Shown: one piece after another, positions 197 to 52,725 of the stretch
How positions within the stretch are numbered: position 1 is the first letter of the stretch
How the letters are laid out: every line of letters begins with the position of its first letter
Source: Takakia lepidozioides
Taxonomy: Eukaryota > Plantae > Bryophyta
Direction: 5' to 3'
Assembly: GCA_030704615.1 (NCBI GenBank)
Contig: CM060734.1
Span: forward strand, 47,740,001 to 47,804,000
Length of the DNA: 64,000 bases
Translations under genes and position numbers: made by a program
Notes under the pieces: model-generated
What the model was told of the DNA's origin: nothing
The model's input: only the letters and a program-made list of their open reading frames with translations
The model's database searches: none

Positions 197-3100
197 ATGA
201 GCTGGGACCTGCATTCTTGGAATATTAGGGGTATTGGGTCAAAGGCGTCTGTCCCCAAGAGATCTAGGATTAGGCAATGGGCCTCGTATTATCTCTCTTC
301 TAATTCTATCATTTTCCTTCAGGAGCATAAGTTGGATGCAAGGAAGATTGCATCGCTTGGGCCATCATTTTGGCTGGCTGCCTCGTCTTGGTGGAATCCC
401 ACCGTGATAGACTCCAGGGGGGGCACGGCCATATTGATTGCCCCTTCCTTAGTGTCTAAGTTTATCAAGGTGGAGTCTTGGATATTAGGCAGAGTGCAAT
501 GTGCCTTCACCTCTCAAGATTCTATATTTCCTTCTACAGCCTTTATAAATATTTACGCTCCTAATTCTACCTCTGACCGCTCCCAGTTATGGTTAGACAT
601 CCATGCTAGGATATTAAGCAACTTCCAGGTGACCAACTGGATTTTGGTTGGTGATTTCAACATGGTGGAACAAATGATGGACAGGCTGGGCTCCTCTGCG
701 CAATCGCTTTCTCCGGAAGAGCGGTAAGCCTGGGACAGGCTTACCTTTTCAGTAGGTCTCTCAGACAGCTTCATCCCCACCAGATCCTCTCTCAGATTCA
801 CATGGAGTAACAATAGAGCCCCCCCGCACTTGCCTATGGCCAGATTGGATAGGTCTTACTGCTCTCCGCTGGCTGCCTCTTGGATTAAACAGGGTCCACT
901 CCCCCCCATATTGCCAGATTTTGACCATGCTCTCTTGTCCCTCAAGCTTACTCCCCCAGGGATCCATCAAAGGGGAAGAGGTTTCTTTAAACTGAATCCG
1001 AGTCTCCTTCGATCCCCAAAAGTGATTCAGCAGCTTGCTACAGTATGGAAAGATGCGGGTAACTAATTCACTTCTCCATCCGTTAGATTTTTTCATAAGT
1101 TGGCTGACACAAAGAAGGCAACTCAATCTTTGGCAAGGCAAGCTGCCATGGATAGGGATCGTAAGGAAAAGGCCCTTATCAAAACCATCTCTCACTGTCA
1201 ATGGTTGGTTGAGTCTAGGTTGGTGGGGCCCTTGACCCATCAATCTCTCACTACGGCGAAACGAAACTTGGCAGAGCTGCGAGCAATCAAAGAAGACAAT
1301 ATCCGTAGGAAAGCTGGTATAAACTGGTCTCTTAAAGGTGAAAAAATGTCGGCCTATTTTTTCCAAAAATCTAGGCAGCGTCAAGCTTCTACATCTATTT
1401 CCTCATTACAAGTCCAATCCAACGAGCTTCATGTTAATCCAAAGGCAATGGCTGGGGTGGCAGCACAGTATTTCTCAAATCTCTTTGCTCGTCCTCCAGC
1501 CTCTGAGAACTCCCTCTTCAGCACAAGTGCAGTTCTGGCCTCTGTCCCCTCTATCCTCACTCACCAGGACAATGCCAAGCTTAATGGTCCCTTCTCAGAA
1601 ATGGAGCTCATGCTGGCCTTAGAAAATCTGGCTTCTCTCAAATCCCCAGGATTTGACAGCCTTCCGGTTGAATTCTTCAAACACCTCTGGTCTATAGTCT
1701 CGGAAGATTTCCTTCTTATGGCCAATGACGTGCTGGCCAAGGGCATTATGCCTTCCCAGCTATCTCAAGGGGTAATAGCTTTGATTTTCAAAAAAAGGGA
1801 TCGTGATTTGATTACCAACTACAGGCCCATTACGTTGCTTAATTCTTCTTACAAGATCATAGCCAAGGCTCTCGCCATGAGGCTTCAGCCCTTTTTGCCC
1901 AGGCTGGTGCGTCCAGAGCAGACTGGGTTTATGCAAAATAGAATGATCCTAGACAATGTTCTTCTGGCGATTGAAGCTCTTCATTTGGCCCATCTTTCGG
2001 ACCAGCCTCTAGCGGTGCTAATGTTGGATTTTGAAAAGGCCTTCGACAATATTGATTGGGCTCTTCTCCTAGGGGTCATTTATAAGCTAGGATTCGAAGG
2101 GAATTTCGTGGCCTGGATAAAAATCCTTCTCTTCTCGGCCTCTAGTAAAGTTCAAGTCAATGGAGTTCTATCCAAATCCTTTCAATTACACAGGTCAGTA
2201 AGGCAGGGGTGCCCTCTATCCCCCTTCCTCTTTCTCATCGCAGCGGATGCCCTTGGTCACTTGCTTGCTGCCAATCCCTCCTTGCAAGGGTTAAAAATCC
2301 CACGATCTTTACCCTCTCCTGCCTCTGTCAAGAATTCCTTATACGCTGATGACACTATCCTATTTATTGACAACTCTACGCAAGCGAACATCTCAGCCAT
2401 CCTTCTGGCTCTAAAGACATTCTGCCTTGCATCAGGGTTACGGATAAATTGGTCCAAGACAGTAGCTATTCTCTCCAAGCTTTCTATCCAAGCGGGGGCA
2501 TCGCATATCGCGCCTTGGGGGGAGGATCTGGGTCTTCGTTGGCTTCAAAATGGAGAAGCCCATAATCTCTTGGGGCACCTAGTGGGTCACGATCTCACAG
2601 ATCTGCAGAGATGCGAGGCGGTTTGGGCCAAAATCAAGAAGAAAATGGGCCATTGGTGCTCCATTCATTTGTCTATAGCTGGGCGGGCTTTGGTGGCTAA
2701 CCAGGTAATCCAATCCTCCTCATGGTTTTCCTCGACTGTCTGGTCCCCTGGCTCAAAGATTATCTCGCAGATTAAATCCATGACTCGCAACTTCATATGG
2801 GGGGCTACCCCGGCTATGCCAAATAGAAGAAGCTTAGTGAGCTTGGCCTAGATCTCTCAAAGAAAAAAAAAACGGGGGCTTGGGGGTTCTGGACCCTCAA
2901 TCTCAAATCCTTGCTTTATTGGCTAAATGGGTGCCTAGGGTTTTAACTCATCTTTCATCTCTGTGGAGCCTTGTTGTAAGATGTCATATTCTGGACTCGG
3001 GGCCTCAAGTGGCTTACTGGCCAGAGTCTTTGAGATGGATAACCTAGGGTAATCGTTCCTCCCGTGCGTTCAAAGGCGTGGCAGTCAATCTTGGGCTACC

Positions 3101-4404
3101 TGGATTAAAATGAGGCCCAATCTTTTCTAGTCCACCCCTAAGACAAGGGAAGAAGCCATGAGGCAGCCTCTTTTTGGAAATCTCAATGCTAACTCTGACT
3201 TCTTAATTACCTACTCTAAAAAATGGGCTTCTTGCGCCATTAGAGTTTACTGCAAAGACTCTGGGAAATGTGATCCAATTCCTCCTTTGAATATGCAACA
3301 TTATTTCGGATCTTTCAACTCGTTTCTTACTGCCCCTTTGCAATTGCTGCAATTCGACCCGGCAGAATGGAACTGGATGTCTAATAAGCATGATCTTTTC
3401 CTGGGATACAGGGTCAAGTTGGGCTACTCTCTATTAAGACCTCCGGTTACTTTTGTGGCCAAATGGAATGCCAAGTGGGGACATCTACCCACTCTCCCCC
3501 TTAATTGGCAACACATCTGGAAGGATGTTTGGAGAAAGGACAGACAGGCCAAAATCTCGGGATTTCTATGGAAGCTAGTAAACAGAATTTTGCCGGTCCT
3601 TCAAGTCATTCCAGATGCTCTTGACCAATGTCAAGTGTGCAACCTGGGTCTCTTGGAATCACTGGATCGCTGTTTGGTTGATATGCCCTTCGCTAGTTCA
3701 TCTGGAAGCCGTATCAGATTGTTTTACTTGGCCTGGGTCCCGTCCATTCCCTTGCAGTCTTCCATAATCTTGCTCAACCTTCACGAAGGATATATCTGGT
3801 CTAATTGCCCGGTATGGGCCTGTCTTCGAGCGCACTCGCTCTGGAATGTATGGAAAAGCAGATGTTCTTTGGTGTTGGGGGGGTCTCAGCCCTGTGCTCA
3901 GAAGGTTTTCTTCATGATCCACTCAGATTTAATGACTGAAGCGAGAAAGGCCTGGAATGTTCTCTGTGCAGCTACTTCTCGATGTGCGCAACGAAGGAGA
4001 CAACAACTTTTCACTGGCTTTGATAACGCCTGGGGGAAAGGGAACATCATCTGCACAAGGACATCAGACTCATCGATTGTCTGGAACGACAACATCCCGC
4101 CATGTTGGCAACTCCACTAGCGCCCAACTATCTATGGAGCAGGAAGAATCAAATAGGAATTGGAGGCATAAGAGAAAGAAAGGGCAAATCCAAAGCCCAC
4201 CTCTCGTTTGAATCCTCTAGACGCAGAATCAATGAGCCTCTGTAGTCTTGTCTCGCTGCTATGGACCTACTCATCCTTAGTCTCATGCAGCCTCTCTCAG
4301 ATTTGGCCACGAGGCAGTGTCTCCTTTATCATCCTTATGGTTGTTTTCCTGAGGTTATTTTTTCCTCAGTTTTATTAATAAAATTTATCAGGGCTCCCCT
4401 GTTC
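197..4404 (+). mobile_element. L1-clade non-LTR retrotransposon (LINE), ORF2 (APE endonuclease-RT-zinc-binding region) broken by stops and a frameshift
   Basis: Endonuclease motifs WNIRG, FLQE, NIYAP, GDFN, RLDR, FDH (197-1066). RT motifs KSPGFDSLP, NYRPITLLN, PEQTGF, LDFEKAFD, VRQGCPLSP, YADD (1100-2851). WKDVW...FLWKL...CQVC region (3158-4120). Stops at 727, 1066 and 2851; 3' UTR ends next to an (AT)n run. Confidence 0.93.
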
Positions 4405-4423
4405 ATATATATATATATATATA
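4405..4423. repeat. (AT)n microsatellite at the LINE 3' end
   Basis: atatatatatatatatata directly after gggctcccctgttc. Confidence 0.7.
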
Positions 4424-7419
4424 CTAATATTCAGCCAAGCATAGTTTATTCTACCATTAATGTTGAGCCTATTTTTTTATCCTCTTCTTTGTAAATCTAC
4501 TCCTAAAAATCCTTGCAAATATCTGGTCATCAACAATCCGGTAATTGTAGAAGGTTTAATTCTCGAGGATTATCTTAATAATGTTGATTTTGATAAATTT
4601 ATGAACGAATGTCTAGAAGGCGACATGTACATGTGATGTACTTTCCACAATGCCACCATTACCAAGAATATTGCATTGTTGAGCAGTTTGGGACATTCAC
4701 CAATTGCACAATCCAAATATCTGCTGATTTTGCTCTACTTGAAGAATATGATGGCCTAGATTCACTCCAACAAGTCTCAGAGAAGAGTTGCGGTAGAAGG
4801 AAGCCCAAGTTTACAAGCATGTCAATGGACATTGCAACACGGGATCGGCATGAAATTCAAAGTTATTTGTACTTTGCTTGAGGAGAATAGACATTGTACC
4901 TATAGATATAGCTTTGTAAGAATTGTTCTCTACAGCCAGATTATCCAATTGATAGATGGATCAGATAATTTGATGCTTTGATTAATTCATTGATGATTGT
5001 TCCAACTTCAGTGGAATTGACACCGATGGTAACAGTTGCAAAACTTCAAAGACATTCATTTCAATAAATTGCCTTGGAGCATCTCAAAAATTATTGAATA
5101 CCAAATTTTTTTTTGTATTTTGGAACATCCATCTGTATATGTTTCAATGATATAAAAATGTAGGCTTGTTCATCAACAATTTGTCCTCAAAATTACTACA
5201 ATTTGAGTTGATCAATGTTGGGGTCAATACCCAAAAATGCAAAATAAAAGGTCCAATGAAAGTGCAGAGCCACAATTTGTGAATAAATTGATCAGATCAG
5301 TAGTTACTAGATTGGAATCATCACCTTGAGAGTTCAACAAGTAGATGATTGTCAAGGTTAATATGAAGAGGGTAGAGTATTGACTAGAAACGCGGAATTA
5401 CAAATTGATGTACATCTTGTAAAACCTTTTCATTTAGTGTCTCTTTGTTTTACATTTTGTTCATATTCCACAATTCGGTTGTAGAAATGAAATTTTCATA
5501 CCCTTCAAAGCATCATGAACCGTATAAACTATAAACCTCCATTACAAATTCATTCATCATTTCACCAATTAAAACTTTGAGGGCATGATAATATGCTTAG
5601 ATGTTTGGCATTTGAAGGAGCACTGGGTGTTTTTCTATTAAAACTGATAAATGAAGTATGTGTAAAGGAAAGTATTTGGGCCATCCCATTATGTTCTCAC
5701 AGTCGGACAGTGGAAAGAAAACATAAACGTCCATGCAAGGTACCACAGACAAGAACTACTCCAATTATTTGAGCAAGAGCTCCTCCGGTATGAACCATTC
5801 ATTACAAGCACACCCTACACTGCCATGCACTAATATGTCTAATGCCAAGTCTTTTGTTTCAAGGAATTCCACTATTGATACAAATTTCTCAAGACTTCTC
5901 AGAGTTTTTCAGGTTATCAACAAGCTTATTACAAATGATCTCTGAACTCTGCAGACATACTTAAGGTGCATCAACCATAGGCTTGTGGTCTGATATTGAC
6001 CAACTAAGATGTCATCATACCACACACTTGTTCCAGAAGTTCCAACATTCAGAACTATACTGTGTAGAGCTGGCAAGCTATGCGGGAGACTTTCAACCTC
6101 AGTCTACTGAAAATGTAGGGCCACTGATATAGTCCAGAACATGATACTCAGTCTTTCTAAAGAGGCCCTTATTGAGCTTACTACTTCTATTAATTAATAC
6201 ATCTATGGTTCTTGTTTGCTTTTCTTTTGGGCCCTGTGTGCAGAGCCCCCTAGGTACTAATTTAATAAATAGTTAGTTACAAGTAGGAAGAGCCCCGCTC
6301 TTCTTTACATACCCTCTCGGGACCCTTCTAGAAGGGTGGGACACATGTCAGACCCGAATCAGGCCTACTCCCACCACTTGACACCTGTACCCTAACACCC
6401 AAATTGGCCTGAACCATCCCCTATTTAATAGGTATCACCTTCTTGCCTTCTTTTTTTGGACCCCTTCATTTCTTGAAATCACTCTACATATGCCTTATTA
6501 TATAACCCCCCCACTCTAATTCCTGGACCACTCTAGAATGAACAGGGCCACCCAAACTTGGGGGGCTTATTGTGAAAGTGCGAATCCTTTGGCCAGTACG
6601 TTGTACTGGGCACATTTGCACCTTTCATACACCATGGGAAGAATCAGATGATAAACAACACAGGCTCAGTTCATATATTCATAGCAATGGTGGCCATCAA
6701 TTCGCCAATTGGTTCCTGCCGTGAAACTCTCTGCCTGAAGCTCTATGGTGTGCAGGGACACGAGAACCATGATGAGATTGTGCTCGACCTTGTATCGTGG
6801 GAGATGCCTCTGCTTTCAGCCGGGGAGGCTTTGACCAACCGCCCATCTCAAAAGGACTCCTCGTTTGTGCGCTGATGTCTGAAGTATGGTGACCTTGGAC
6901 TTTTCTGCAAAAGCCACTGGTGGGCATCTGAGCAGCCATAGCGTCAAGCACAACCTCTCCAGACAAGGCTACAACCACCAGAGCTTCAAGCCTCTTTACA
7001 ATAACATGGAACAACCTTGAACGCCCTCCTTCTACTACTGATAGTAGCAGTAAGAACAGCTTTTACTGGTTTTCAGGAAGCAGAGCAAGTTGTCAACAAT
7101 CTATACAACTGTAGATGCAACCCAGTCTACAAAACATCATCATGCCAGCTGCAGTCACAAGCTCTGCTGCAGTGTTAAATGAAGGTAGCCTCAACCTTAT
7201 GAAGCCTGTTGTCCCACCACCGTGAAGCAATTGAGACAAACTTCCAGAGCCATTCTTTGCTCATTGCTTGAACTGTAAGGAAGAACTGCAAGAATTGTGT
7301 TTCCCTACCATCCTTCGGATTTGTTGCAGGCCGGGAAGGCGTCACAGCTATTATTTGCAAGGGCCTGTGCCCAGCAGTCCCAAGCACCCATTTCCACTCC
7401 ACACACGGGCGTGTGAATC

Positions 7420-8185
7420 TGCTGTAAGACATAAGCCCAGTCAGTACAAGAGCAAGACAGGGCTGGTCCACGACACCACATTTTGTTCTGCCATTTTGTC
7501 AGACACACCCTTTGCATCTTTGATGCTCCCACATTTGGCACACATCTCCACGAACGAGGGCAGTATCTGAGATTGTATTTGGCACAATTCCAGCTTTCAC
7601 GATGTCAGCATGGACCTCTTTGGCCTTTTCCAGGGCTCCCAGGCTGGCACATGCATTGCAAGCATAAATGAACGTGACCTGGTCAAGTTTCACAGAAGTG
7701 TCTAAGATACTCCTGCCATACCCATGCTTCATGAATCCTTCCATCATTATAGTCCATAAAACCATGTTTCATTCTGGCATTTTGTCAAACACTCGGTGTG
7801 CATCTACGATGCTCCCGCATTTGACATACATGTCGACAAGGGTGTTGTGTAGAAAAATAGTTGGCTTAAATCCACTTTGAATGATGTGCTTTCCAGCTGC
7901 GAAGCCCTTCATCTTGATGCACTTATGAAGGAGAGAGACATAAGTATTCAAGTGTGCCGAAATGCCTCCTTGATTCAAAACGTGCAGAGCCTCTTTTAGC
8001 TGTCCTCCCTCACATAGTTTCCGAACATGCCGATAAGTATCAGAGATCTTGTAGACTCCCTCTATTGGTCTTTGTTTGGAAGTGGTACGGTCCATGGGGG
8101 AGGTGCCTGATTTTATCAGCTGTGCTGCTGCTGCTTCCAGTTGACCATCTACCATTGCTGGTTTCTTGTACCTCTTAATCCACAA
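7420..8185 (-). pseudogene. Truncated, frameshifted PLS-class PPR gene
   Basis: Consecutive ORF pieces LCEGGQLKEALHVL, NTLVDMYVKCGSIVDAHRVFDKMPE, DQVTFIYACNACASLGALEKAKEVHADI resemble the neighbouring PPR gene; frames shift and no E/DYW domain follows. Confidence 0.85.
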
Positions 8186-9809
8186 TGCCTCACTCTTGTG
8201 CTTGAAATCTGGTTGCCTTGGACTGGATCTGCACGCGCACTCTATCCCTGCCTCAACAACAATAATGCATAGATCCTGCCTCTTGACACTAGTAGCTGAG
8301 AACGAAAATCCAGAAATTCACTAAGCAACCACCCCATCCCTACTTACCAAACACTAGTTTCTATGCTGAATTGCTGACAAGATTTCAGTAACATAATAGG
8401 CGTTCACCGTTTTGCCTGCATTGTCAGACGATTGAGTCAGGTTCGAAAAACATTCCTTCCAAAGCTTCTTCTCGTCTCTATTTTCGGGTTTTGGACATTT
8501 GCCTGCAACCCCACTGGCAATAACATGTCAAAAAAATTCAGAACCACATAGTGGCACTCCATGAGCTAACTTACTGATGAAAAAGCAGGGGAAAATCTAG
8601 AAAGAGGACAAGAGAGCCCAAATATGTTCTCACCACGTTGTCCTTGACCTTCTGTCAAGGCAGCAGCTAGCTTTTCTTTCACCCAAGGAGGATTCAACCA
8701 ACCCTCAATCGGAAGGATCTCGTGTTCACTGCTTATGTCTGTAGTCAGTTAGTTTGGATTGGTCTGTGAGAACCACCACATGTAGCTGAGCAGTCAGAGT
8801 TTTAATCACAGCTTCCTACTACCAAGCACAACCGTCAACCCTCCAAAATACCTTGCAAACTCGAGGGAAAAAACCTTGAGCAACCTACTCTCATGCCCTG
8901 GTGTACAATACCGACAGTAAGAGCTCTGTTGCAGAGCAAACAGGGATTCTAATCAAACCCCACAACTAGAGGTACAATCCAGTCCACAAACTGTCAGAGT
9001 CAGTCCCTCCTCTCCTTCCTTGACAGACTTGTCCTCGACCCACATGACAATAGTGGACCTTGTCAATGCTGTAGTCCCACCATTGTGAAGGATCTATAAA
9101 GAAGTCCTGCCAGCGCTGTTCCATGCTCCACCGTTGACCTACCTGCCAGATGTACGCAAAGCTTCAAGAGGGCAGAGATTATAGCCCTTGTCTGACCATC
9201 CTGTGTGCTTCTTGGGCCAAATTAGGTTAGTTTCTGGATAGGTCAACTCCACTTCCAAGTTTAAAAGATAGAAGCGCCAATGTTTCCAGTTACTAACTTC
9301 AATTACCATCCCTGACAGCTTGGGAGGCGCCATAGCTACTACATGCACTCGGTCCTTGGCGAATTGCCAAGGTGGATCCCGCTTCCAGCTCCAGAGCCCA
9401 GAGTCTTAATCTGTTACATGATGTGAGGCCTCTCGCATGACCGAGACGAGAAGACAGGGCCTTGGGTATGGAGTCCACATCCATACTCAGGAGAACATTG
9501 GAGCAAGCTGCCATCCCCTCTCGTGAGTGAGAGAGATGCAGAAAATATTCTCCTGTACAACCCACCCCGTCCCCTTCGACCCAATGCGAGAAACAATGGC
9601 ACCACCTTGTCAAGATGGGAAATGATCACCCAGCTTCATGGACCATGCATGGTGTAAACCATCATTTGCTTCTCCATTTTGCTCTTACTTGCTCTTCTTC
9701 TCCGCTCCACACATCACAAAGTATGCGTTGATGGTGTAGTGTGCCAAGTGCCAACCCACTTTCGAATTTCGATAAACTCTGACAAACACACTTCTTTCGT
9801 ATTGCTTGT

Positions 9810-27961: not shown

Positions 27962-28454
27962 TGTCGTGCGCATACATATCGCTACACAACTACATCGCTG
28001 TCCAAACCACACCACACATATATGCACAATAAAGTAGTCTAGCACAATAAAGCATGAAAACCAAACCATCACTCTTAGAAATAGAAGTCGAGCCAGGGGC
28101 ACCCCAAGCTATGGGGACTCCACCCCACAACAACCTACACTCCCATCATAAGCACACTCAGATCTAAACGCATGAAGGAGCTCGGTCGCGCAGGCTCAAC
28201 TCGAGAGAGATGAGCTGCGCGACTGCCGCTCTCGTGAAGATAAGACAGACCAGGTGTCAAACTAAACTTGACACCTGATTTAACACTTGACCTAAATCCA
28301 AGTGTTAAATACAAATAACTAGTTTTATTCTAGCTGTTTTCACACTGTGCTTATTTAACTTGACAGCTGTCGTGCGCATACATATCGCTACACAACTACA
28401 TCGCTGTCCAAACCACACCACACATATATGCACAATAAAGTAGTCTAGCACAAT
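27962..28454. repeat. E1 A-B-GC-A repeat block (sense 3' end)
   Basis: 87-bp A copies read as identical; 317-bp B matches the other terminus; junction cttgaca-gc-tgtcgtg at 28359-28374. Confidence 0.93.
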
Positions 28455-28464
28455 CGCCCCCCTA
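28455..28464 (-). other. Polypurine-tract-like site of E1 (sense TAGGGGGGCG) abutting the inner A repeat
   Basis: cgccccccta directly follows the inner A copy in both E1 and E2 (49340-49349). Confidence 0.65.
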
Positions 28465-28712
28465 GCTGGTGGATAGGTCCCTCTACCTCCAGATAGCTAC
28501 AAGATGTAATAGCCACAGCCGTACTAAGTCCTCTATCACTGTCTTTATCGTGCTCAAACTCTATCAACCAAGAGGCCGGGTACAAGAGTAGCCCCATCGT
28601 TAGTCGCCGTCTTGCAATCTATGAACTTGAGCCAAGATCTCGTGTGTTCAAGGTCTCCTAGTAGCTGGGCCTTGCGTTTCTTGTTAGCCTCCCATGGTTG
28701 TATCCACTCCCA

Positions 28713-31700
28713 CTATCCAATGCAATGTGGACAGAACCAATCCCCATCCGGAACCATCTCAAGAGGTGGAGTCAAGCATCCCATATGCCAACCTCTAGAG
28801 CACCGATCACATACCAGCATGGTGGCTGCCCCTTTAGCAGACCCACACAACATGCACCTCAAACCTGCAGATACCACTGCCAGGTTTGGGTCAATCCTGC
28901 CATCGACATTCGGAAGGTGACATGGCGCACAATTACGCACATGGTCCTTCCAAGTGATGCCATCCCGACCCTCCAAGACCAAGACGCCTGAGGGCAAGAC
29001 CTCTCGAACCCTCAAAATAACACGTCCTGCAGTCACATCCAGGGTCGTAGGAGCAGTCTGCTGCAGATAGACATAGTCACCAGGGTTGAATCTCCGAACC
29101 CCAGGACGATAGCCCCCACCACGTATGGTAGCATACCTCAACGTATCACGGTGTTGTGCAATGGCAAGGTTCTCGAAAGCCATAGGCATGACTCTCTTGA
29201 ACAACTCTGCACGCTGCTCACATGCACGTGCCCACACGTCCGGATCGTCAAGGTTAAGAACTGTAGCAGCTTCTCTGCGAATGGATGTAGGCAAATCCGG
29301 CTCTCGGCCAAAGAGAAGAAAGTATGGTGAGAAGGAGGCAAGTGATGCTTGCTTGCTGAACCTGTAGCCCATGGCTAACCAGGGTAACTGAAGGTCCCAA
29401 TCTCCTAGGTGTCCCTTCTGCAAGCCATACTTGCGCAAACCCCTCTTTACTGTCTGAACAACTCTCTCTGCCAAGCCATCGGCTTCAGGATGATCCCGAG
29501 AAGTGGTGCGGTGGTCTATCAAGGCCTTGTCACACAAAGCCTGAAACTCCCCCAAGAACTCTCTCCCTTGGTCCGTGAGTACCTCAGCTGGAGCACCGAA
29601 TCGGCTAAGCACACAATCCAGGAATGCATACGCAGCTCCCTCACTAGCCTTATCAGGCAATGGAACCAATTCAATCCACTTGGAGAAGTGCTCCACCATC
29701 ACCAACACGTACTTGTTGTGGCGCATGGTCAGTGGCAACGGCCCTGCGAAGTCAAGACTCCACCTGTAGCCCAATCCCATGATCGGAAGAGGGTGCAATT
29801 GTGGAGTAGGGGCGTTGAATGAAGCACGCACCCTGTCACACACCATGCACCTAGCCACAAAGTGTTGTACCTCTGTGTGCATACCACGCCACCAATACTG
29901 CCCCTGCAGTAGACTATGAGTGCGTCGCACCCCAAAATGCCCCAACTCCTCATGGGCATGCCGCACTAACCGTGCCCGCTGTGTTGGGTGAGGCACAATC
30001 CTCACTCGACCATCCTCCCACACTCGGAGCAGGTGTGTCCCCTCCCACCTGAACCTCTTGGCTCGTTGTAGGATCCGATCCCTCTCCTTGGCAGTCATAG
30101 TGGCTGCCGTGTCTCCACTGCGGAGGTAGTCCAACACAACTGAATCCTCATGTATATCTTTGGCGCCACCCTGCTCATTGCTGGCCTCAGGGTCCTCAGA
30201 CACTTGATCTACAGTCATCCCTGTTGTAGGTCCAACCTGGCCTTCCGCTGCCAAGATACACAGAAATGCAGATGCATGCCATCCGGGCACCATCTCCTCG
30301 TCCGTCTCACCATGCCACCGAGCTCCAGTGTCATCCTGTTGGCTCGTGCATGGATTGCGACTCAACCCATCTGCATTTCGATTGACCAAACCCGGTCGAT
30401 GCACCACCTGAAAGTCATACTCTTGAAGGATGAGTGCCCACCGTGCAAGCTTCCCCGTAAGCTTGTCTGACTCCATCAACCACTTGAGTGGTTGGTGATC
30501 CGTGACAAGGGTGAAGAGATTGCCGTATAAATAGCACCTGAAGTGTGCCACGGCCCACACTGCAGCTAAGCATTCTCCCTCATATGAGCTATACTTAGAC
30601 TCTGCAGCATTGTTCGAGCGGCTAGCATAAGCCACTACGAACTCTCTTCCCTCATCATCCACCTGTGTGAGCACCGCTCCAAGCCCCAGCATGCTCCAAT
30701 CTGTATGCAGCTGAAAAGGACGCCCCCTGATAGGTCGTCTCAAGATGGGCGCCGAGGTCAACCTCGCCTTGAGCTCTTGAAAAGCTTGTTCTTGCTCATC
30801 TTCCCACTGCCACTCCTGGTCCACCTTGGTCAGCTTGGTTAGAGCCTTTGCAATGGCACTAAATCCCTTAACAAACCGTCTGTAATAGTTTGCTAACCCC
30901 ATGAAAGCTCGAACTCGGCTCACATCCGTGGGGCGTGGAACCTGTGCAATGGACTCTACCTTAGTCTGCTGTACCCCCAATCCTCCAGGATATATCATGT
31001 GACCCAGATACTCAATCTGGTTGTGGAAAAACTTGCACTTGCCCGGATGTAACTTCAATCCGTGCGTCCTCAAGCGCTCAAATACCCCCTGAAGGTGTCT
31101 CTCATGCTCCTCCACCGTAGCACTAAAGATGATGATGTCATCTATGTAGCACCGAGCAAACTCCACCCCTGCTAGAATCCTGTCCATGACTCTTTGAAAC
31201 TCAGCTCAAGCCCAAATGGTAAGAACCGCCACTGGTATAGGCAATCCTTCCCGTGCTCATTGATCCCCCAGAATGCCGTCTTTTGCTTATCCGCCTCCTT
31301 GATCGGCAACTGGTGATATCCGGATCGTAAATCCAACGTGCTAAAGACCTTGGAATGCCCAATGGCATCAAAGATCTCCTCTGGTGTTGGCATGGCATAC
31401 CTATCGGACTTGGTCTGACGATTTACAGGCCGGTAATCACCGCACATACGTCTCTCCGTCCAATTGCCATAGACATCCTTCTTAGCTGGCATCACTGTGG
31501 CTGAAGCATACTCTCCACCAGAGAGCTCCACCAAACCTGCCTCCCAGAGATCTTGAGTCCTCATCTGAATCAAAGACCTCTCCATGTCACTGTATCTATA
31601 GGGTCTCCGAAAGATTGGCGTGTCAGTGGCCAACTCAATACGGATCTCTTGACCCTTCAGTGCTCCCAAGTCCTTCAAACTGAAGGCAAAGCAATTCCTG

Positions 31701-31837
31701 TAAGCCCTCAGGAACCGCCGTATACGTCGTCTCTCTCCTCCGGTGACAATGGGTCCAATATCAGGCTCCCAATTGTCCTCCGTAACTGCAACCTTAAGTC
31801 CAGTGGGCTTAGAGGTAGAGGACGCGTCCCGTGGTTG
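28713..31837 (-). CDS. E1 pol: RT, RNase H, DDE integrase and C-terminal PHD finger (about 10-nt deletion frameshift near 31205)
   Basis: RMCGDYRPVN, LDLRSGYHQL, YIDDIIIF, LHTDWS...YEGECLA...TDHQPL, H-H-C-C zinc finger, LDFAGP/TDQGREF/AER catalytic D-D-E, PHD C4HC3 at 28722-28856. Confidence 0.93.
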
Positions 31838-34800
31838 CTATGCTGCAACCTCTTGAGCAGTACCCCCTTCCTGCTCAGTCAATGACAAGGCCTCATCCTG
31901 CCCCATCATCTCATCATTGAGAACCTCCTCATCCATCGCAGCTGCCTTCGCTGCCAACTCCCTCTGAACCTCGAGCACCTCCCACATGTGCCATGGATGT
32001 CTACACCTCGTGGTCCTCACCGGCTCGCCCCCACTCGCTGCCTGTACCGTCTCGGTAGGCAGAGAGACCATCAAGGGAAGTGCACTCCGCACTCTACGTT
32101 GCTCAGCCATAGCCAAGCTGACAATCCAGGTCAAGCAATTGAGATCCATTGCTTGCCCCAACACCTGACGACGTGATGCCTCAGAAAGGGAAGGCACCGC
32201 CGTGGTCCCAGTGGAAAACCCCATAGCCCGCTCTCGCTCGTCGGCATTAGGCTCCACTAACTGCTGCAACTGAGCATCCCACAGGAGGCCAGGTCCACCA
32301 TCCCGAAAAGCATGGGATCCTGGGAAGCTGAGCAGTGTAGGTAATGCTGCTCGTGGTTGACCCACCCTGTTGACCACTGCCAAAGGCGAACGGTCATCGT
32401 GTCTCACACGTTGAGACTGCCTTCCTGTGTCCAAAATGCCATCCACGGTGAGGTGTGCTGGCCGCTGCACCCCATCAAATGCACGCTTGAGCAGTGCGGG
32501 TGGCATCAAGTTAGTCCACCATAGTCGTGGACGATGAGCCCGTGACCCCACTGCAGCTGCATCCAGCAATACTGCTGACCCAAGCCACGACCGGACTTGA
32601 TGCACACTGGCCATCACCCTGGCCCGAGAATCACCCATCAGTGGCACATTCTCCAAGATGTATGCCGGAGATACAGCCTGATGAAGCTGCAAGTGGCGCA
32701 AAATCCGCACCATCTCCCAAAACAGACCCGTCCTCGAGTCTCGCAATCCATTGCCATGCCCGGCTGATGAATGCCCTTGGCAGGGCCAACCTGCCACTAC
32801 CAGATCAATGGAGCCAACCCGCTCCAAATCCTGCGCCCCCAGCAACGCAATGTCTGCTGGCAAGGCCTGCTGATATCCACGAACTGCAGACACCGGCAAC
32901 AACTCAGGGTGCTGCTGCACCATCTGAGCAACATGGCGCAGTGAGACGCGTCGTGCAGTCTCATCCCTCTCCACATACAGGTAACGTCGAACTCGTACAC
33001 CTGCCTGCAGCACTGCAGCCAATCCAGTGCTGATCCCGCCAAATAAGTCCAGAAGGCATATGCCTTCATCCGGTCGCTGCCACACAAGAGGTGTGGTGTC
33101 CAATGGCGACAACTGAGGTGGCCCTGGTACAATCACCGCACTCTCCTCCTCTCCTGACGGTACAAAAGCTTCTACCCAAGCTTGTTGCACCCGTCCATCA
33201 GCAGCGTGCTGCAAATCCTTGCTCGTACCCCACAACGGAGTGTGAGCAACCATGGCAGGCAACTCCGCCGTACCATGCATGTCATCCTGCTCTGCTGGAG
33301 GTGGCACATCCTCTGCATGGGCATTGCCTTCCAGCAACTCTCCAGGCCAGCTGACTGCAGCTGTGAAGGCGGCTAGTGTTGGCATCTTGCCCCGCTGAGC
33401 AGCTGCAATACCCCCAATGAATGTCACAGGGAGCTGTGCACGGCGACCATCCCCTGACTGCCATCCAGGCCTGTAGGATGCTGACTCCTCCCAGAAATCC
33501 AGGGTGAAGCCCATGGGGTATAACACTGCCCCACCAACGAGGACATCGTAAGAGACCGCGTCTGTCACAATGGCCTTGGCTCGCATCACTGAGCCATCTA
33601 CAGGATGATCCGGCTGCAGTCTAATAGCCAACTGATGTCGTGTCATGCCGCGAGCCTGCTCTGATCCTCCCAGAGATGTCTGTATCTGGAAAGGACAAGG
33701 CTCCATATCCGCCTCCATGAGGCCCAAACCTGCAATAGCAGCTCTGCCCAACATCAGTGGCTGAGCTCCTGAGTCCAACAAGACCCGCAGTGGCCGGTAC
33801 TTCTTGCCTGCCGGTCCACTCAAAGTGAAAATGCCTCCCTGGTTGTCTAACAAGACAACTCCAGGTGTCACCATGGCGCGCTCAAAGGCTGGCCTAGCTG
33901 GCAGCTCCGTCAATCTGGCAGCTGCAGCTTGCCAGGGCGCTGCCGTGGCAGTCTTGACCCTCAAATCCGAGGATCCCTCTGCCACTACACCTTCCACTAA
34001 CTCCGCAGAAGATGAAGTGACCTCTCCACTCTCGCAGAGTGTTGCTGCTAGTCTGAACACTGCAGCTGGTCTCACTCCCGGCGTCGCAATCATGGTCGCC
34101 GAGAACAGTGGGGCTTGACACACAGAGGTGGCTGCTCCCAATAACACACCGGCTGCACTAGCCTTGGTAGTAGGTGTCAGTGCTGCACGGGTAGCTCTCC
34201 CCAATGGCAAAGTAACCTCCGCCTCGGTAACAGTCGGGCGAGAACTAGGTGCCATGGATGGCGTTGACACTGTCTCCGCCAAGGTGAATGACTGAGGCAG
34301 CCTTGCCTGACGGCTTGCCTCCCCACGTTGTGGATCCAACTCCACCTCTGCACCTCGTGGCTCAGGAACTCGTGTTGCTCCTCGAGTCACGGCTGCAGCA
34401 GACTCCACCTGCTCTAATGGTAGTGCTGCTCCGCACATGAATCCCATTCCGCCCATATCTCCTCCCTCAGGAGCAGGAGGTGGGCCATCCCGCCTGGGAG
34501 CCGGTACCGCCTGAGCTATAGCCATGGCAGCGATCCTCTGCTCTAGCTGCTGAAGCCGATTGGCCATGCCTTGGTCAACACCCTGACCTCCGCGTCCTTG
34601 GCCATGTGGAGGTTGCCCTTGGCCTGCACCTCGTGCCCGACCACCTCGTCCTCTTTGGGCTGGTCCACCTCGCCCCCGGCCACCATTGTTCCCTTGGAAC
34701 TGGCCTGGGCGCAACTCAGGATGCAAGTCATAACACTGGGCATCTCCATGCCCATACTTGCCACAATGTCCACACTGCAACTGTGCAGGCTGTGCTTGTG

Positions 34801-36010
34801 CCGGCCTTCTGCCACTCTCTGGGCAATCTCTCTTGACATGGGGTCCTCCACATGTCCAACATATCACCCCTGGTTGCTGTTGGCCTGCAAAAGATGCCAC
34901 GGGCCTCTGCACCTGAGGTCCCCTGTAAGCTCCATGGAACTTGGGCTGGGCAACCTTGCCCCCCTGACCACGCTGTTGGGCAGTCCCTTGTGCTTGTGGG
35001 CTGACAGCTGTGCCCCGTACAGGCATGTCCTTACCAAATCCAATTGTAACAACTCGCTCCTCCACCATGTTGAGCTCAATCCGCTCAGCCAGCAGAAACA
35101 CATCTGCTAATGTGGGTTGGGCTGCTTGTAACAGGGTTGCATCTCGCACCCTTCTCTTGAGCTCCTTGTCCAGAATTCCATACCAAAATTGGATTGCCTG
35201 AGCTTCAGTAACCCCTTGGGTCACACTTATCAAGCGCCTCATACGAGTGTACGCCTCTCGCAGGCTCTCACTGGGTTTGCGCTGGAAGTCTTGCAAACTT
35301 CGCAGCTTCTCTGTCCGTACACCTTGGTAGTTCCTCCGCAACTCCTGGAAGAACTCCACCACCGGGTTGAATCTTGGCAAATGTGTTGTAGTCGTGGCAG
35401 GAGAAGCACCTTTTGAACTGGTACCACCTTCAGAAGTACCAGCACTACTTGCTCCACTACTAGTGCTGGCAGTGGGAGCTATTGGTACTGATGCAGCTAC
35501 TGGTCGCGTCGTGCCTCGAGTAATGGAGACGTAGTCAGGTGACCAATACATCCTCCACTCCTCAATCTCTGCTTCATGTCCTCGCCTGAACTCGTGGTAA
35601 TCGTCCATAGGCGGGCCTTCCAAATGCTGGAACAGTCCCTTCCACGCCATGAATGGGGTGAATAGCTGTGGATTGCACATCTGCTGCAAATCACACCAGC
35701 TGTCGAACTCCTGGATAAAGTCATCCAACTCGATTGTGCCCACAGCTCCAGAGTACCTACGAGGCCCCTTGGTAGCTCCATACATCTCCTCCATGTCGTC
35801 CCACAACAATGGCGAATGAAAGTGCACACCTGTTGATGAAGCCTCCGAGTCTGTGTCTGACGCTACAGTAGTTGAGGGTGGCGGTGAAGGTGGTCTGAAC
35901 CGAATACCTCGTCTTGTGAACCCACTCTCACTGTCACTGCTTGTAGCCGTACTCCCCTCAAAACCCTTGGGTAACTCCGTAATGACACTCACAATGTGCA
36001 CCTCCTCCAC
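31838..36010 (-). CDS. E1 ORF1: Gag (two zinc knuckles, RGG-rich), aspartic protease and DNMT3-like C5 cytosine methyltransferase (about 32120-33065)
   Basis: Open 1390-aa frame; CWTCGGPHVKRDC, CGHCGKYGHGDAQC, VLLDSGA; MTase motifs LDLFGGIS, YVERD, AGWPCQG, YILENV, AHRPRLWW, ERERAMGF, RRQVLGQA. Confidence 0.92.
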   Translation of the reverse strand: MEEVHIVSVITELPKGFEGSTATSSDSESGFTRRGIRFRPPSPPPSTTVASDTDSEASSTGVHFHSPLLWDDMEEMYGATKGPRRYSGAVGTIELDDFIQEFDSWCDLQQMCNPQLFTPFMAWKGLFQHLEGPPMDDYHEFRRGHEAEIEEWRMYWSPDYVSITRGTTRPVAASVPIAPTASTSSGASSAGTSEGGTSSKGASPATTTTHLPRFNPVVEFFQELRRNYQGVRTEKLRSLQDFQRKPSESLREAYTRMRRLISVTQGVTEAQAIQFWYGILDKELKRRVRDATLLQAAQPTLADVFLLAERIELNMVEERVVTIGFGKDMPVRGTAVSPQAQGTAQQRGQGGKVAQPKFHGAYRGPQVQRPVASFAGQQQPGVICWTCGGPHVKRDCPESGRRPAQAQPAQLQCGHCGKYGHGDAQCYDLHPELRPGQFQGNNGGRGRGGPAQRGRGGRARGAGQGQPPHGQGRGGQGVDQGMANRLQQLEQRIAAMAIAQAVPAPRRDGPPPAPEGGDMGGMGFMCGAALPLEQVESAAAVTRGATRVPEPRGAEVELDPQRGEASRQARLPQSFTLAETVSTPSMAPSSRPTVTEAEVTLPLGRATRAALTPTTKASAAGVLLGAATSVCQAPLFSATMIATPGVRPAAVFRLAATLCESGEVTSSSAELVEGVVAEGSSDLRVKTATAAPWQAAAARLTELPARPAFERAMVTPGVVLLDNQGGIFTLSGPAGKKYRPLRVLLDSGAQPLMLGRAAIAGLGLMEADMEPCPFQIQTSLGGSEQARGMTRHQLAIRLQPDHPVDGSVMRAKAIVTDAVSYDVLVGGAVLYPMGFTLDFWEESASYRPGWQSGDGRRAQLPVTFIGGIAAAQRGKMPTLAAFTAAVSWPGELLEGNAHAEDVPPPAEQDDMHGTAELPAMVAHTPLWGTSKDLQHAADGRVQQAWVEAFVPSGEEESAVIVPGPPQLSPLDTTPLVWQRPDEGICLLDLFGGISTGLAAVLQAGVRVRRYLYVERDETARRVSLRHVAQMVQQHPELLPVSAVRGYQQALPADIALLGAQDLERVGSIDLVVAGWPCQGHSSAGHGNGLRDSRTGLFWEMVRILRHLQLHQAVSPAYILENVPLMGDSRARVMASVHQVRSWLGSAVLLDAAAVGSRAHRPRLWWTNLMPPALLKRAFDGVQRPAHLTVDGILDTGRQSQRVRHDDRSPLAVVNRVGQPRAALPTLLSFPGSHAFRDGGPGLLWDAQLQQLVEPNADERERAMGFSTGTTAVPSLSEASRRQVLGQAMDLNCLTWIVSLAMAEQRRVRSALPLMVSLPTETVQAASGGEPVRTTRCRHPWHMWEVLEVQRELAAKAAAMDEEVLNDEMMGQDEALSLTEQEGGTAQEVAA

Positions 36011-36529
36011 GTGACACTATAAGGCTCTAGTACTAATCTAATAGTGACACGGGTGGGCACCTGTTGCAGTCTAAGGATCATATCCCAATGGCTCAGGGCA
36101 CCTGCACCTGCATCCACCGCAAGAACTCCTATGGTTGGCTGGTCATCAACCCAGCCTCACCATAGAAGAAACACTGGTGGTCTTGCTGGTCATCACTCCA
36201 GCCTCACCACCGACAGCATACTCTAGGATTGACCGGTGATCAAATCCGGCCTAATCCCTATGAAAGCAAGCGCCCACACAAAACCAACATGGCGCACAGT
36301 CAAGCATGCAGGTGTTGGGGGGGATCCAAACACAAGAAATCAAAACATCAACACCCCCACACCAAAATCCAGCTGCAATGTTGATCCTGCAGAATATCCC
36401 AGCCCAAAACCCCGGACTGACTGGCCTCCACCAAGAGAGGCTTTGGCAACTACAAGTACAAGGTAATGAAAATAGTACAGAGATGGAGGGGAAGAATAGA
36501 AGCCCGCCCAAGCAAGATCTAATCCTGAT

Positions 36530-39833: not shown

Positions 39834-40648
39834 AAAGCATGAAAACCAAACCATCACTCTTAGAAATAGAAGTCGAGCCAGGGGCACCCCAAGCTATGGG
39901 GACTCCACCCCACAACAACCTACACTCCCATCATAAGCACACTCAGATCTAAACGCATGAAGGAGCTCGGTCGCGCAGGCTCAACTCGAGAGAGATGAGC
40001 TGCGCGACTGCCGCTCTCGTGAAGATAAGACAGACCAGGTGTCAAACTAAACTTGACACCTGATTTAACACTTGACCTAAATCCAAGTGTTAAATACAAA
40101 TAACTAGTTTTATTCTAGCTGTTTTCACACTGTGCTTATTTAACTTGGGGACTCCACCCCACAACAACCTACACTCCCATCATAAGCACACTCAGATCTA
40201 AACGCATGAAGGAGCTCGGTCGCGCAGGCTCAACTCGAGAGAGATGAGCTGCGCGACTGCCGCTCTCGTGAAGATAAGACAGACCAGGTGTCAAACTAAA
40301 CTTGACACCTGATTTAACACTTGACCTAAATCCAAGTGTTAAATACAAATAACTAGTTTTATTCTAGCTGTTTTCACACTGTGCTTATTTAACTTGGGGA
40401 CTCCACCCCACAACAACCTACACTCCCATCATAAGCACACTCAGATCTAAACGCATGAAGGAGCTCGGTCGCGCAGGCTCAACTCGAGAGAGATGAGCTG
40501 CGCGACTGCCGCTCTCGTGAAGATAAGACAGACCAGGTGTCAAACTAAACTTGACACCTGATTTAACACTTGACCTAAATCCAAGTGTTAAATACAAATA
40601 ACTAGTTTTATTCTAGCTGTTTTCACACTGTGCTTATTTAACTTGACA
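39834..40648. repeat. E1 terminal B repeat (sense 5' end) containing 3 tandem 249-bp units
   Basis: Units start at 39897, 40146 and 40395; 317 + 2 x 249 = 815 bp. Confidence 0.92.
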
Positions 40649-43600
40649 AATTGGAGATTTGCTGGTTTCAAGATGATGGATTTCTGTTGGTCAAAAACTG
40701 CATCCCCTTCCTTTGGCGCAAGATACGATCGTCGAGAAAGAGCATCTGGTTTTCCTTGAAGATGTCCGGGACGGTAGGTAATAACAAAATCAAACCTTGC
40801 TAGTGACATACTCCATCTCGCTTGACGTCGATTCAAAACACGAGCACTCATAAAATATTCGAGGTTTTTGTGATCGGTATAGACAGTGACCTGATGTTTA
40901 GCTCCGTCCAATAGATGACGTCACTCCTCAAAAGCATCGATAATCGCTAGAAGTTCTTTGTCATGGATTTCATAATTGATCTCCGCAGCGGAAAATTTGC
41001 GAGAACGAAAACCAACAGGGTGGAGTCGGCCATCTGTACCGTATTGTGAGAGTACCGCGCCAAGTGCAAAGTCCGATGCATCTGCTTCTAAGAAGAATGG
41101 TTTAGATGGGTCTGCATGTACCAGTATTGGAGCCGTTGTAAATTCCTGCTTCAGCCTTTCAAATGCCTGGTCAGCCTTCTCATCCCATACAAATTTGTCC
41201 TTCCATGTGAATCATGTCAATGGTGCACCAATTTTGGAGTAGTCATTGATGAAGATTCTATAGAAATTTGCAAAACCCAGAAAACATTGTACATCTCGGA
41301 CCGAAGTTGGTTTAATCCACTCGATGATGGTTTGTATTTTCTTCTGATCCATAAAGACGCATTTGTCGGAAATAATGTAGCCCAGAAATTCGACCTCAGA
41401 TTGATGGAAAAGACATTTTTCCAACTTGGCATATAGTCATATTTCTCTTAATTTATCAAGGACAAGGCGTACATGGCGGCCATGTTCTTCTTCGTTCTGT
41501 GAAAATATCAAAATGTCGTCCAAATAGATGACTACAAAGTCATCTAAAAATTCTCGAAAGATGTCATTCATCATATGTTGGAAAATTATTGGAGCATTTG
41601 TAAGACCGAAAGGCATAACACTGTATTCAAAAATGTCCATACCTTGTTCGAAAAGTTGTTTTCCATTCGTCTCCTTCTTTTATCCGTACAAGGTTATAAG
41701 CTCCTCTCAAGTCGATTTTGGTGAAATCCTCGCTCGTCCCACCTGGTCGAGAAGCCCAAAAATCAGCGGCAACGGATAACGATTCTTGATTGTGACTTTG
41801 TTGAGACCGCAATAGTCGACACACATGCGTAATGATTCGTCCTTCTTTTACACAAACAAGAGAGGCGTCCCCGCGGGTGATTTTGAATGTCGGATGAAGT
41901 GCTTTGACAAATTTTCATCAATGTATTCGCGTAATGCTGACAACTCCGTCTGGGATAAGTTATAGATTGGGCCGAATGGTGGTTGGGCTCCTTCTTGTAA
42001 CTCAATTGCACAGTCATAAGGTCGATGTTCTGGCAATATGTCTGCATTTTTCTTCTCGAAGACATATTTGAAATCTTGATATTGAGCGGGTAATGTTGAA
42101 GTACCTTTGTCTGTTGTGGTCTTGATCGGAGTCGCATAAAGTGCAAATGTCACCTCCTTTTTGGTAGCTCTCATGAAGGCTCTTGCTCCAAGAAACAGGG
42201 GTTGAATACCTTTGGTACTTTTGCATTTTTGTCTTGCCGAAATTTTTCGTGATTGCCAGTCGATGTCAGGATTATGAAGTACAAACCAGGGAAGTCCAAG
42301 GATCACAGGATTCGTTGGAGACTGGATGACATTGAAAACAATATGTGATACTTGATTTTTAAGTTTCACTTCAAGGGGTCAAGTTTCATGGTCAACATTT
42401 CCTGATGCTAACGGTCGTCCATCGATAACTTCAACAGGGGCCGAGAATTTCTTTCTTACGAGCGTTAAATTGTGTTGCTTCACAAAAACTTTGTCAATAA
42501 AACACGCTAAAGCGCCCGAGTCCAAAAGTGCTTCTATGGAGATATCTCGATTTTGCATCCTGATCTTTACTGGAACTGTGAAACAAGATACAGGATCTGG
42601 AGGTAGAAAGAGACTTTTTTTGGGTGAGAAGTTTGGGGTGTCCAGCCGCATGCTCCCTACTGTGACTGGACATCTTCGTTTTCCGACCTCCTCGTATCGA
42701 ACACTTGAGTGGTGCCCCGAGCTTTGAATCTTATCTTGTTGGGGCAGTTTAATGCCATGTGATCATTTTCTCCGCAATAAAGGCATAATCCATTCGAGCG
42801 TCGTCTTTGTTTTTCATGTGGCGTCAATGGCTTGAATCGGACAACATCAATCTGCATAGGATCATTACCGGATGTCTGATGGATCGTTGAATTTGGTGCC
42901 GTAGTAGCAGCGGCACGGTGCGTCGTCGACCATCCAGATCGCTTCTCTTGACGTCTTTCGAACAAATGATTATTGCATGCAATGACTTGGGTGATGAATT
43001 CGCTCAGTGTACTCATGTTTGGCATTGTCAGTAACAAATCTTTAACATCATCTTTTAGGCCACATCGAAACTGATTAATGAGGCTCTTCTCATTCCAGTC
43101 AAGGTCGCACGCAAGTTGTTGAAATTCGGCAACATAAACGGAAGCTGGACGTGCTCCTTGTCGAAGATTTCGCATCTTTGTTTCTGCAACTCTCTCTCTA
43201 TCATTCTCTCCAAACGTTGCAGTGAACTCGGACATAAACGCTTCAAAATTATATAGTAAATGCGAATTTTTCTCTAATAGCGGTGCAAACCAAGATAGGG
43301 CAGTGCCTGATAGAAGGGTGCCCACGAATCCCACTTGAATACCTTCATCAGAGTAGCGTTGTGTATGTAGTCGTAGGAACAATCGTACTTGTTGAACAAA
43401 TCCGCGAAATTTTGATCTCGTCCCATCAAATTTCTCGGGCATGCTGACCTTTGGTTCCCTTGTAATCTGCTGAAGATTTGGAGGAACCGTTGTAGTAGGA
43501 TTTGTTGTAGTAGGGACTCGTAAGGTTGAAGATCCATTGTTCGACTCCTTCAACTCTGAAATTTGTTGTTGCAAATTGTTGAGAGCATTGCCAAGGTCTT

Positions 43601-52500: not shown

Positions 52501-52725
52501 GATTGGCGTGTCAGTGGCCAACTCAATACGGATCTCTTGACCCTTCAGTGCTCCCAAGTCCTTCAAACTGAAGGCAAAGCAATTCCTGTAAGCCCTCAGG
52601 AACCGCCGTATACGTCGTCTCTCTCCTCCGGTGACAATGGGTCCAATGTCAGGCTCCCAATTGTCCTCCGTAACTACAACCTTAAGTCCAGTGGGCTTAG
52701 AGGTAGAGGACGCGTCCCGTGGTTG
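49596..52725 (-). pseudogene. E2 pol: RT, RNase H, integrase, PHD (49605-49739); several frameshifts and a stop
   Basis: ORF pieces 51514-52566, 50882-51514, 50634-50927, 50402-50680 and 49596-50255 are collinear with E1 pol. Confidence 0.92.

Follow-up and report, generated by a model that had tools for sequence, protein, structure and literature searches.

The sequence UAG-CAR-YYA is the consensus for efficient stop-codon readthrough of the tobacco mosaic virus (TMV) type (PMC3159437), and the tobamoviruses conserve xxA-UAG-CAA-UUA even though the amino acids encoded by flanking codons vary (PMC3159437). For this type-I signal the six bases after the UAG suffice, according to Firth et al. 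2011 (PMC3159437), which cites Skuzeski et al. 1991. Readthrough is also known from the gammaretroviruses as a device that sets the Gag/Pol ratio (PMC3159437). A family of Ty3/gypsy elements that carry a DNA methyltransferase (DNMT) is represented by KnitGypsy-Dnmt3 (PMC5890265) and has been named 'streptophytes (Gypsy-DNMT3)' (10.64898/2026.05.21.726589); the Klebsormidium DNMT is described as part of the Pol polyprotein open reading frame (ORF) (de Mendoza et al. 2018, PMC5890265). Here we analyze a 64,000-nt stretch of the genome of the bryophyte Takakia lepidozioides (GenBank assembly GCA_030704615.1, contig CM060734.1, positions 47,740,001 to 47,804,000; hereafter the window), which holds two copies of a Gypsy-DNMT3-type element, E1 and E2, in which an in-frame UAG-CAA-CCA lies between the DNMT and the reverse transcriptase (RT). 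Programmed type-I, tobamovirus-like readthrough at UAG-CAA-YYA is probably the best explanation of this junction, and the stop most likely sets the ratio of two protein products.

Both elements lie on the minus strand. The coding-strand 15-mer GCA-TAG-CAA-CCA-CGG at the end of ORF1 is the reverse complement of ccgtggttgctatgc (plus strand, 31829-31843) in E1, and the identical 15-mer is present in E2 at 52717-52731; a search of the window with up to 3 mismatches returned no perfect matches other than these two. The original prediction of a TAG-CAA-CCA after the methyltransferase in both copies is thereby borne out, and its description of UAG-CAR-YYA as the TMV-type readthrough signal of plants agrees with PMC3159437. 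The two cassettes are as follows.

31832-31840, minus strand: predicted leaky-stop cassette TAG-CAA-CCA of E1 (stop at 31840-31838; preceding codon GCA, which places A at position -1)
52720-52728, minus strand: predicted leaky-stop cassette TAG-CAA-CCA of E2 (stop at 52728-52726)

Past the TAG of E1, translation in the ORF1 frame reads QPRDASSTSKPTGLK...EDNWEPDIGP...FLRAYRNCFAF... into the RT, and no stop interrupts this frame for 221 codons in E1 and 403 in E2. The expectation that the RT frame would continue in phase without a further stop therefore holds over these stretches, although neither copy is intact further downstream, and the 159 nt previously given for the interval between the stop and the RT ORF extend to the first TTG, at 31678. 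CAR-YYA fits 11 of the 2421 in-frame codon pairs of E1 (0.45%), a rarity that makes the match at the cassette exceed chance.

A word search with the N-terminal part of the E2 RT identified thousands of relatives, the best at 76-87% identity, among them proteins of Calypogeia fissa, Marchantia polymorpha and Klebsormidium nitens; a DNMT search added Sphagnum troendelagicum, S. jensenii, S. fallax and Riccia sorocarpa, and a scan of metagenome contigs with the RT N-terminal part found no relative. The DNA around 11 relative proteins was examined, with the DNMT C-terminus and the RT N-terminus placed by tblastn. One Klebsormidium contig (L005) contains the RT with no DNMT within 1.4 kb upstream and is uninformative for the junction; the K. 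nitens protein P0274 was used instead. Eight independent lineages were distinguished (organisms A/C, Riccia, Calypogeia, Sphagnum, Marchantia and three metagenomic lineages), with DNMT and RT parts that share 44-93% amino-acid identity with the window element. Wherever both domains are present they stand in one frame, apart from copy-specific frameshifts, and a stop occurs at the homologous point of the DNMT-RT linker in 8 of 8 lineages, always as TAG-CAA and never as TGA or TAA. The junction codons are given below.

Window, E1 and E2: GCA TAG CAA CCA
L011 (Logan SRR327418, 90-93% amino-acid identity): GCA TAG CAA CCA
L013, Riccia sorocarpa: GAA TAG CAA CCA
L004, Calypogeia fissa: GCA TAG CAA TCA
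L001 (ENA ERZ25070695): AAC TAG CAA TCA
L006, Marchantia polymorpha: GCA TAG CAA CTA
L008/L009/L010 (JGI): CAA TAG CAA CTA
L007 (JGI): CAT TAG CAA TTA
L012, Sphagnum troendelagicum: GCA TAG CAA CCC
L002/L003 (JGI): GTA TAG CAA CCC

CAA directly follows the TAG in all 11 aligned sequences, position -1 is A in 9 of the 11, and YYA occupies positions +7 to +9 in seven of the eight lineages, the window included, in the forms CCA, TCA, CTA and TTA. Because the third residue varies among Pro, Ser and Leu while YYA is retained, selection appears to act on the RNA and not on the protein. TAGCAA is the sole run of invariant columns in a multiple alignment in which the linker has a mean column identity of 54%, and the linker is not alignable beyond it. 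Conservation of TAG-CAR-YYA, which had been proposed as a check among copies of the family, thus extends well beyond the family, across eight lineages. No consistent 3' structure was found in 103-nt folds from six lineages (z-scores +0.12 to -1.94, with no shared fold; pseudoknots are outside the folding tool), which fits type-I signals that need only the hexanucleotide and not the pseudoknot-dependent type of murine leukemia virus (MuLV).

The Sphagnum variant TAG-CAA-CCC-ATG (L012:6059-6070, L002:5857-5868) may represent a weaker leak or a shift to reinitiation.

None of the other stops in the examined relatives is common to two lineages. L001 has an extra TAG 78 codons upstream of the junction stop, at a site that is Gln or Glu in four open sister ORF1s (P0254, P0257, P0260 and P0261; 1427-1451 aa), all of which terminate at the junction stop; private lesions are thus not conserved, and the junction stop is. 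Open ORF1 proteins that end at the junction and lack an RT are found in Marchantia (P0241, P0242), in JGI data (P0243) and among P0254-P0261, of which P0255-P0259 come from ENA/JGI data. By its gene coordinates alone, the ENA contig of P0256 carries ORF1 at 1120..5118 (1332 aa) and RT-RNase H (RH)-integrase (IN)-PHD at 5131..8262 (1043 aa), both open, with 12 nt between the ORFs and gene starts 4011 nt apart, a multiple of 3 that puts them in the same frame. This layout indicates that elements exist in which the junction stop is the only interruption.

The tail between DNMT and stop has a motif, (E/D)ELR(G/A)QRV(L/F)AALAQ..G...A.E.F..VF, that is conserved in one clade (P0254-P0261). The E1 tail (window ~31841-32000) contains the possibly related WEVLEVQRELAAKAA. 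The motif may serve as a protease site or as a docking helix.

By their domain content E1 and E2 are identified as Ty3/gypsy-type retrotransposon copies of the Gypsy-DNMT3 kind, with the order Gag-protease (PR)-DNMT-RT-RH-IN-PHD; the Ty3/gypsy domain order PR-RT-RH-IN is present along both copies (Pfam). The Gag assignment in E1 ORF1 comes from a weak Pfam match, and the DNMT of E1 retains the catalytic motifs FGGISTG (motif I), GWPCQGHS (motif IV) and ENV. E1 ORF1 probably starts at Met73 (35794; MEEMYG), in agreement with where the Marchantia ORF1 proteins have their N-termini. The features of the two copies are listed here.

31841-36010, minus strand: E1 ORF1, Gag-PR-DNMT-tail, 1390 open codons (the ORF is listed to 31838 with its stop)
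34733-34861, minus strand: two Gag CCHC zinc knuckles of E1 (sequence motif)
33761-33781, minus strand: aspartic protease active-site motif LLDSGAQ of E1 (weak Pfam matches to gag-asp_proteas and Asp_protease_2)
32138-33043, minus strand: C5 cytosine methyltransferase domain of E1, motif I to GQAMDLN (PF00145, E 2e-12)
31841-32137, minus strand: variable acidic tail or linker of E1, DNMT to stop (dN/dS 0.63; 24-nt indel in E2 versus E1)
31207-31837, minus strand: post-stop frame of E1 in the ORF1 phase, linker and RT N-terminal part (first in-frame ATG 84 codons in)
31197-31207, minus strand: 10-nt gap in E1 versus E2 and most family contigs (frameshift within the RT FGLKNAP motif)
28716-31187, minus strand: 824-aa ORF of E1, RT C-terminal part, RNase H, integrase (H2C2 and rve) and PHD finger (Pfam)
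28722-28856, minus strand: PHD finger of E1 (Pfam)
52729-56898, minus strand: ORF1 homologue of E2 (one premature in-frame stop at 54697-54699)
51517-52725, minus strand: post-stop frame of E2, 403 codons, complete RT and the start of RNase H (five 1-nt gaps further downstream in pol)

Internally, E1 and E2 share 88% identity across 8 kb, and their terminal repeats are only ~70% alike; we therefore regard the two copies as separate members of the family and not as a recent segmental duplicate. The terminal repeats of E1 are 100% identical, and its 10-nt gap is rare among the family contigs of one public DNA run, which together mark the gap as a private lesion of a young copy. In that run the family is very abundant, with 19,009 contigs matching 1.6 kb of the element (window 31000-32600); contigs from two further organisms cross the junction without a joint, at ~94% identity. 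The ends of E1 consist of an 87-nt unit at 27962-28048 and again at 28368-28454, flanking a 314-nt unit (28049-28362) that recurs at 39834-40147 and runs on as tandem 249-nt copies to 40648, the copies being 100% identical. This arrangement, which is not one of plain long terminal repeats (LTRs), fits by description the DIRS-like repeats of KnitGypsy-Dnmt3 (de Mendoza 2018).

Selection on either side of the stop was measured codon-wise between E1 and E2 by the Nei-Gojobori method. Purifying selection is seen on both sides of it. ORF1 has a dN/dS of 0.23. In the stretch from the stop to the E1 frameshift the ratio is 0.11, with 10 synonymous and 4 non-synonymous differences (one-sided binomial p = 3e-4), and in the 824-codon pol ORF it is 0.13; the two wrong frames give 1.1 to 4.2. 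Since both copies have the TAG, the low values in pol argue that pol has been kept by protein-level selection in stop-bearing lineages. Along the aligned copies (E1 28441-36447 versus E2 49327-57352), dS changes from 1.1 at the Gag N-terminus to 0.12 in the DNMT, 0.025 just past the stop and 0.38 at the PHD end, with a minimum of 0.025-0.1 around the junction versus 0.23-1.1 elsewhere. The gradient suggests recombination between subfamilies or RNA-level constraint at the junction, and given the recombination signal the E1/E2 pair alone is insufficient to settle whether the TAG is a lesion.

A continuous DNMT-RT frame is found in distant relatives with DNMT identities of 37-50% (P0264, P0268, P0263, P0286 and P0274 of K. 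nitens); P0264 is a Gag-PR-DNMT-RT-RH-IN-PHD protein of 2358 aa, and P0268 has 2318 aa. In the DNMT maximum-likelihood tree the stop-bearing sequences form two clades (support 100/99 each) that are joined at 74/79, and the window DNMT groups with the DNMT family of K. nitens P0274. One gain of the stop is enough for this distribution, and a single origin is compatible with the tree at the moderate support of 74/79. A sense codon at the junction in other copies, by which the original prediction would have recognized a shared inactivating mutation, does occur in these single-ORF relatives; that it is confined to such distant ones points to a derived trait of one clade and not to a lesion. From these comparisons we take the stop to be a derived, long-kept character of the bryophyte-borne clade, which arose from single-ORF ancestors.

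A further arrangement places the DNMT between RNase H and integrase (RT-RH-DNMT-IN-PHD; P0270, P0271, P0272, P0275, P0280, P0281, P0285, P0269 and P0279). These elements, from metagenomes and other sources, make up a clade with good support in the DNMT tree (99/99) and would represent a second insertion site or a domain shuffle. At least three expression layouts occur in the Gypsy-DNMT3 family: a single ORF, a DNMT between RNase H and IN, and a putative leaky stop after the DNMT.

The recurrence of the same TAG in eight lineages of different bryophyte classes and metagenomes, with proteins at 44-76% identity to those of the window, always followed by CAA and, except in Sphagnum, by YYA, is difficult to reconcile with an inactivating nonsense mutation that came from a dead master copy, or was spread by recombination, with the copies mobilized in trans. 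A CAG to TAG change is admittedly an easy C-to-T change at a CHG site, E1 and E2 are both defective elsewhere, the low dS near their junction is compatible with a recombined segment, and the distant relatives are without the stop. Against this, a random site would have a CAR-YYA context with a prior of ~0.5%, the remaining stops are each private to a single copy, pol is under strong purifying selection in the lineages that share the TAG, and on the P0256 contig both ORFs are fully open save for the junction stop. The divergence of the relatives excludes recent horizontal copies of one dead element, and the comparative data contradict a nonsense mutation to the point that we give it very little credence. 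Somewhat less improbable, though still unlikely, is that the UAG is a true terminator under selection and that Pol is reached by another bypass, namely splicing out of the stop, a subgenomic or spliced RNA with a ...YAG acceptor, termination-reinitiation or internal entry. Ogre provides a precedent for splicing, with GAG-PROT parted from RT-RH-INT by an intron that some of the transcripts splice out (PMC6317226), and the TAG is usable as the AG of a 3' splice site, but the invariant bases reach 3' of this AG into CAA-YYA, as in a readthrough signal and not an exon start, and no GT donor, pyrimidine tract or AUG is conserved in the junction alignment. Gene models of Marchantia and Sphagnum (P0244, P0266 and P0094) do have predicted introns across the stop; these differ among the models, however, and look like annotation workarounds, and the one contig across the junction that might be RNA shows no splicing. 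For reinitiation, the Sphagnum copies offer an ATG two codons past the stop, whereas among the lineages as a whole no AUG after the stop is conserved and the position of the first in-frame ATG ranges between +2 and +116 codons; in E1, L007 and L008 this ATG is 84-116 codons in, inside conserved RT sequence, which makes a separately initiated Pol unlikely. Finally, the two ORFs are always in one frame with exactly one stop between them, which neither splicing nor reinitiation needs.

In addition to the gene models already mentioned, further Marchantia models (P0246 and P0252, as well as P0094 and P0244) and the Sphagnum fallax model P0266 join DNMT to RT by differing introns over the stop; these models have the look of artefacts from degenerate copies. 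Gene models of Marchantia and Sphagnum place what seem to be spurious introns over a conserved stop.

Several observations weigh against programmed readthrough. As of 2009 all experimentally verified plant readthrough was viral (PMC2754532), and the CAR-YYA rule was defined in angiosperm cells and yeast, not in bryophytes (PMC3159437). The Sphagnum lineage, with CAA-CCC, is off consensus at +9 and has an ATG directly thereafter. Both window copies are defective downstream of the stop, E1 by its 10-nt gap and E2 by its five 1-nt gaps in pol; the junction codons were compared among E1, E2 and the examined relatives (the 11 aligned sequences), out of a family with thousands of copies in the host; and the RNA status of the single unspliced contig across the junction is a guess. 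We infer the occurrence of readthrough, its efficiency and the amino acid inserted. Readthrough as the source of RT-RH-IN-PHD, as the original prediction had it, is nevertheless supported by the conservation of TAG-CAA in eight lineages together with the purifying selection on pol.

Under programmed readthrough, most ribosomes would end at the UAG and release Gag-PR-DNMT, a protein of ~1318 aa if counted from Met73. The few others, probably some percent, would decode the UAG with a near-cognate tRNA (Tyr or Gln, as expected for TMV-type suppression in plants), stay in frame and produce Gag-PR-DNMT-RT-RH-IN-PHD. The stop would thereby keep structural protein, protease and methyltransferase at a high ratio relative to the replication enzymes, with Gag-PR-DNMT expected, again by comparison with TMV-type suppression, to exceed the full fusion by roughly tenfold or more. 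It had been proposed that the stop would bring the methyltransferase to Gag-like levels; the DNMT is, however, already equimolar with Gag in the single-ORF relatives, and the stop is better seen as down-titrating RT-RH-IN-PHD than as raising the DNMT. The accompanying suggestion that protease and DNMT lie unusually on the abundant side applies to the DNMT, which would lie there too; for the protease this side is already known from elements with GAG-PROT separated from RT-RH-INT (PMC6317226).

The predicted signal resembles that of the TMV 126K/183K replicase in having UAG with CAA-YYA, usually A at -1, and a polymerase downstream in frame, and in both cases conservation is limited to a few codons around the stop (PMC3159437); the folds of the bryophyte elements predicted no extended 3' structure that the lineages share. 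Unlike TMV, the host of the signal is a chromosomal LTR retrotransposon of bryophytes and not an RNA virus, and the signal is here predicted from sequence; moreover, the tobamoviruses fix UUA, while the bryophyte elements vary YY freely (CC, TC, CT and TT). MuLV (type III) is comparable as a retroelement in which UAG readthrough yields a minority fusion with RT and IN (PMC3159437). In contrast to the C at +4, the hexanucleotide and the lack of a consistent predicted structure described above, MuLV uses UAG-G with a pseudoknot 8 nt downstream, and its stop precedes the protease, whereas the stop of the bryophyte elements follows both protease and DNMT.

Among retrotransposons, KnitGypsy-Dnmt3 (PMC5890265) shares with the window elements the Ty3/gypsy type, a Dnmt3-like DNMT of the same family between PR and RT, possibly split DIRS-like terminal repeats (by description) and, in relatives, an integrase with a C-terminal PHD finger. 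It differs in that its DNMT lies in one continuous polyprotein (P0274, and also P0264 and P0268), whereas the window clade has a UAG after the DNMT. Ogre and other two-ORF plant LTR elements (Neumann et al. 2019, PMC6317226) are similar in that the switch follows the protease and Gag and PR are abundant; Ogre differs from the window elements in that an intron of ~274 bp is removed in a subset of transcripts, in place of one in-frame stop in a readthrough context with the DNMT on the abundant side. An in-frame stop between the upstream and pol ORFs is also described for rice RIRE2 (PMC2754532) and Candida Tca2 (PMC2194720). RIRE2 is cited only as a readthrough candidate, and Tca2 has a UGA with a putative pseudoknot and a bypass mechanism that is called unclear; a TMV-type hexanucleotide conserved across host classes is not reported for either element in those papers.

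The Gypsy-DNMT3 family (PMC5890265), type-I readthrough, and the position of the protease on the abundant side (PMC6317226) are thus already known. The available main text and supplementary material of PMC5890265 contain no mention of a stop or readthrough in Gypsy-DNMT3, and full-text literature searches returned none. What is new is the conserved stop of the clade, with its predicted type-I leakiness, its position after the DNMT and its apparent origin from single-ORF ancestors.

The window also contains features unrelated to the junction. An intronless 746-aa pentatricopeptide repeat (PPR) protein with E, E+ and DYW deaminase domains, of the organelle RNA-editing factor type, is encoded at 9813-12050 (minus strand) and marks the host as a land plant with RNA editing in its organelles. 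A separate retroelement is represented by a LINE-like reverse transcriptase ORF at 1100-2848 (plus strand; PF00078) and an ORF with a weak zf-RVT match at 3158-4117 (plus strand). Between E1 and E2, at 42660-43649 (minus strand) and 44977-45957 (plus strand), are chromovirus-type Ty3/gypsy fragments on opposite strands, comprising an ORF for a Gag/Ty3 capsid as well as the C-terminus of an integrase, which has an SH3 fold and a chromodomain. Upstream of the E2 ORF1, 57673-58480 consists of eight overlapping 181-nt copies, mostly 51 nt apart, and this array holds an opposite-strand 320-aa ORF without a Pfam match.

Taken as a whole, the broader scenario is one to which we give about even chances: a retrotransposon clade of bryophytes (liverworts and Sphagnum) gained a tobamovirus-type switch from single-ORF ancestors and has kept it at ~50% DNMT identity, which would make it the first case of programmed readthrough of this type outside viruses in the plant lineage, with the DNMT in large excess over RT and IN. 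Experimentally verified readthrough in plants is that of RNA viruses (PMC2754532); the element, which is chromosomal, provides a natural UAG-CAA-YYA cassette with phylogenetic validation, and its four natural YY pyrimidine pairs form a ready mutational series for the YYA rule in bryophytes. The gain of the stop within the family would constitute a datable evolutionary switch in the dosing of DNMT versus the replication enzymes. If the scenario is true, it would suggest that the DNMT works stoichiometrically with the particle, where it might for example mark new cDNA or target chromatin, instead of catalytically at trace levels.

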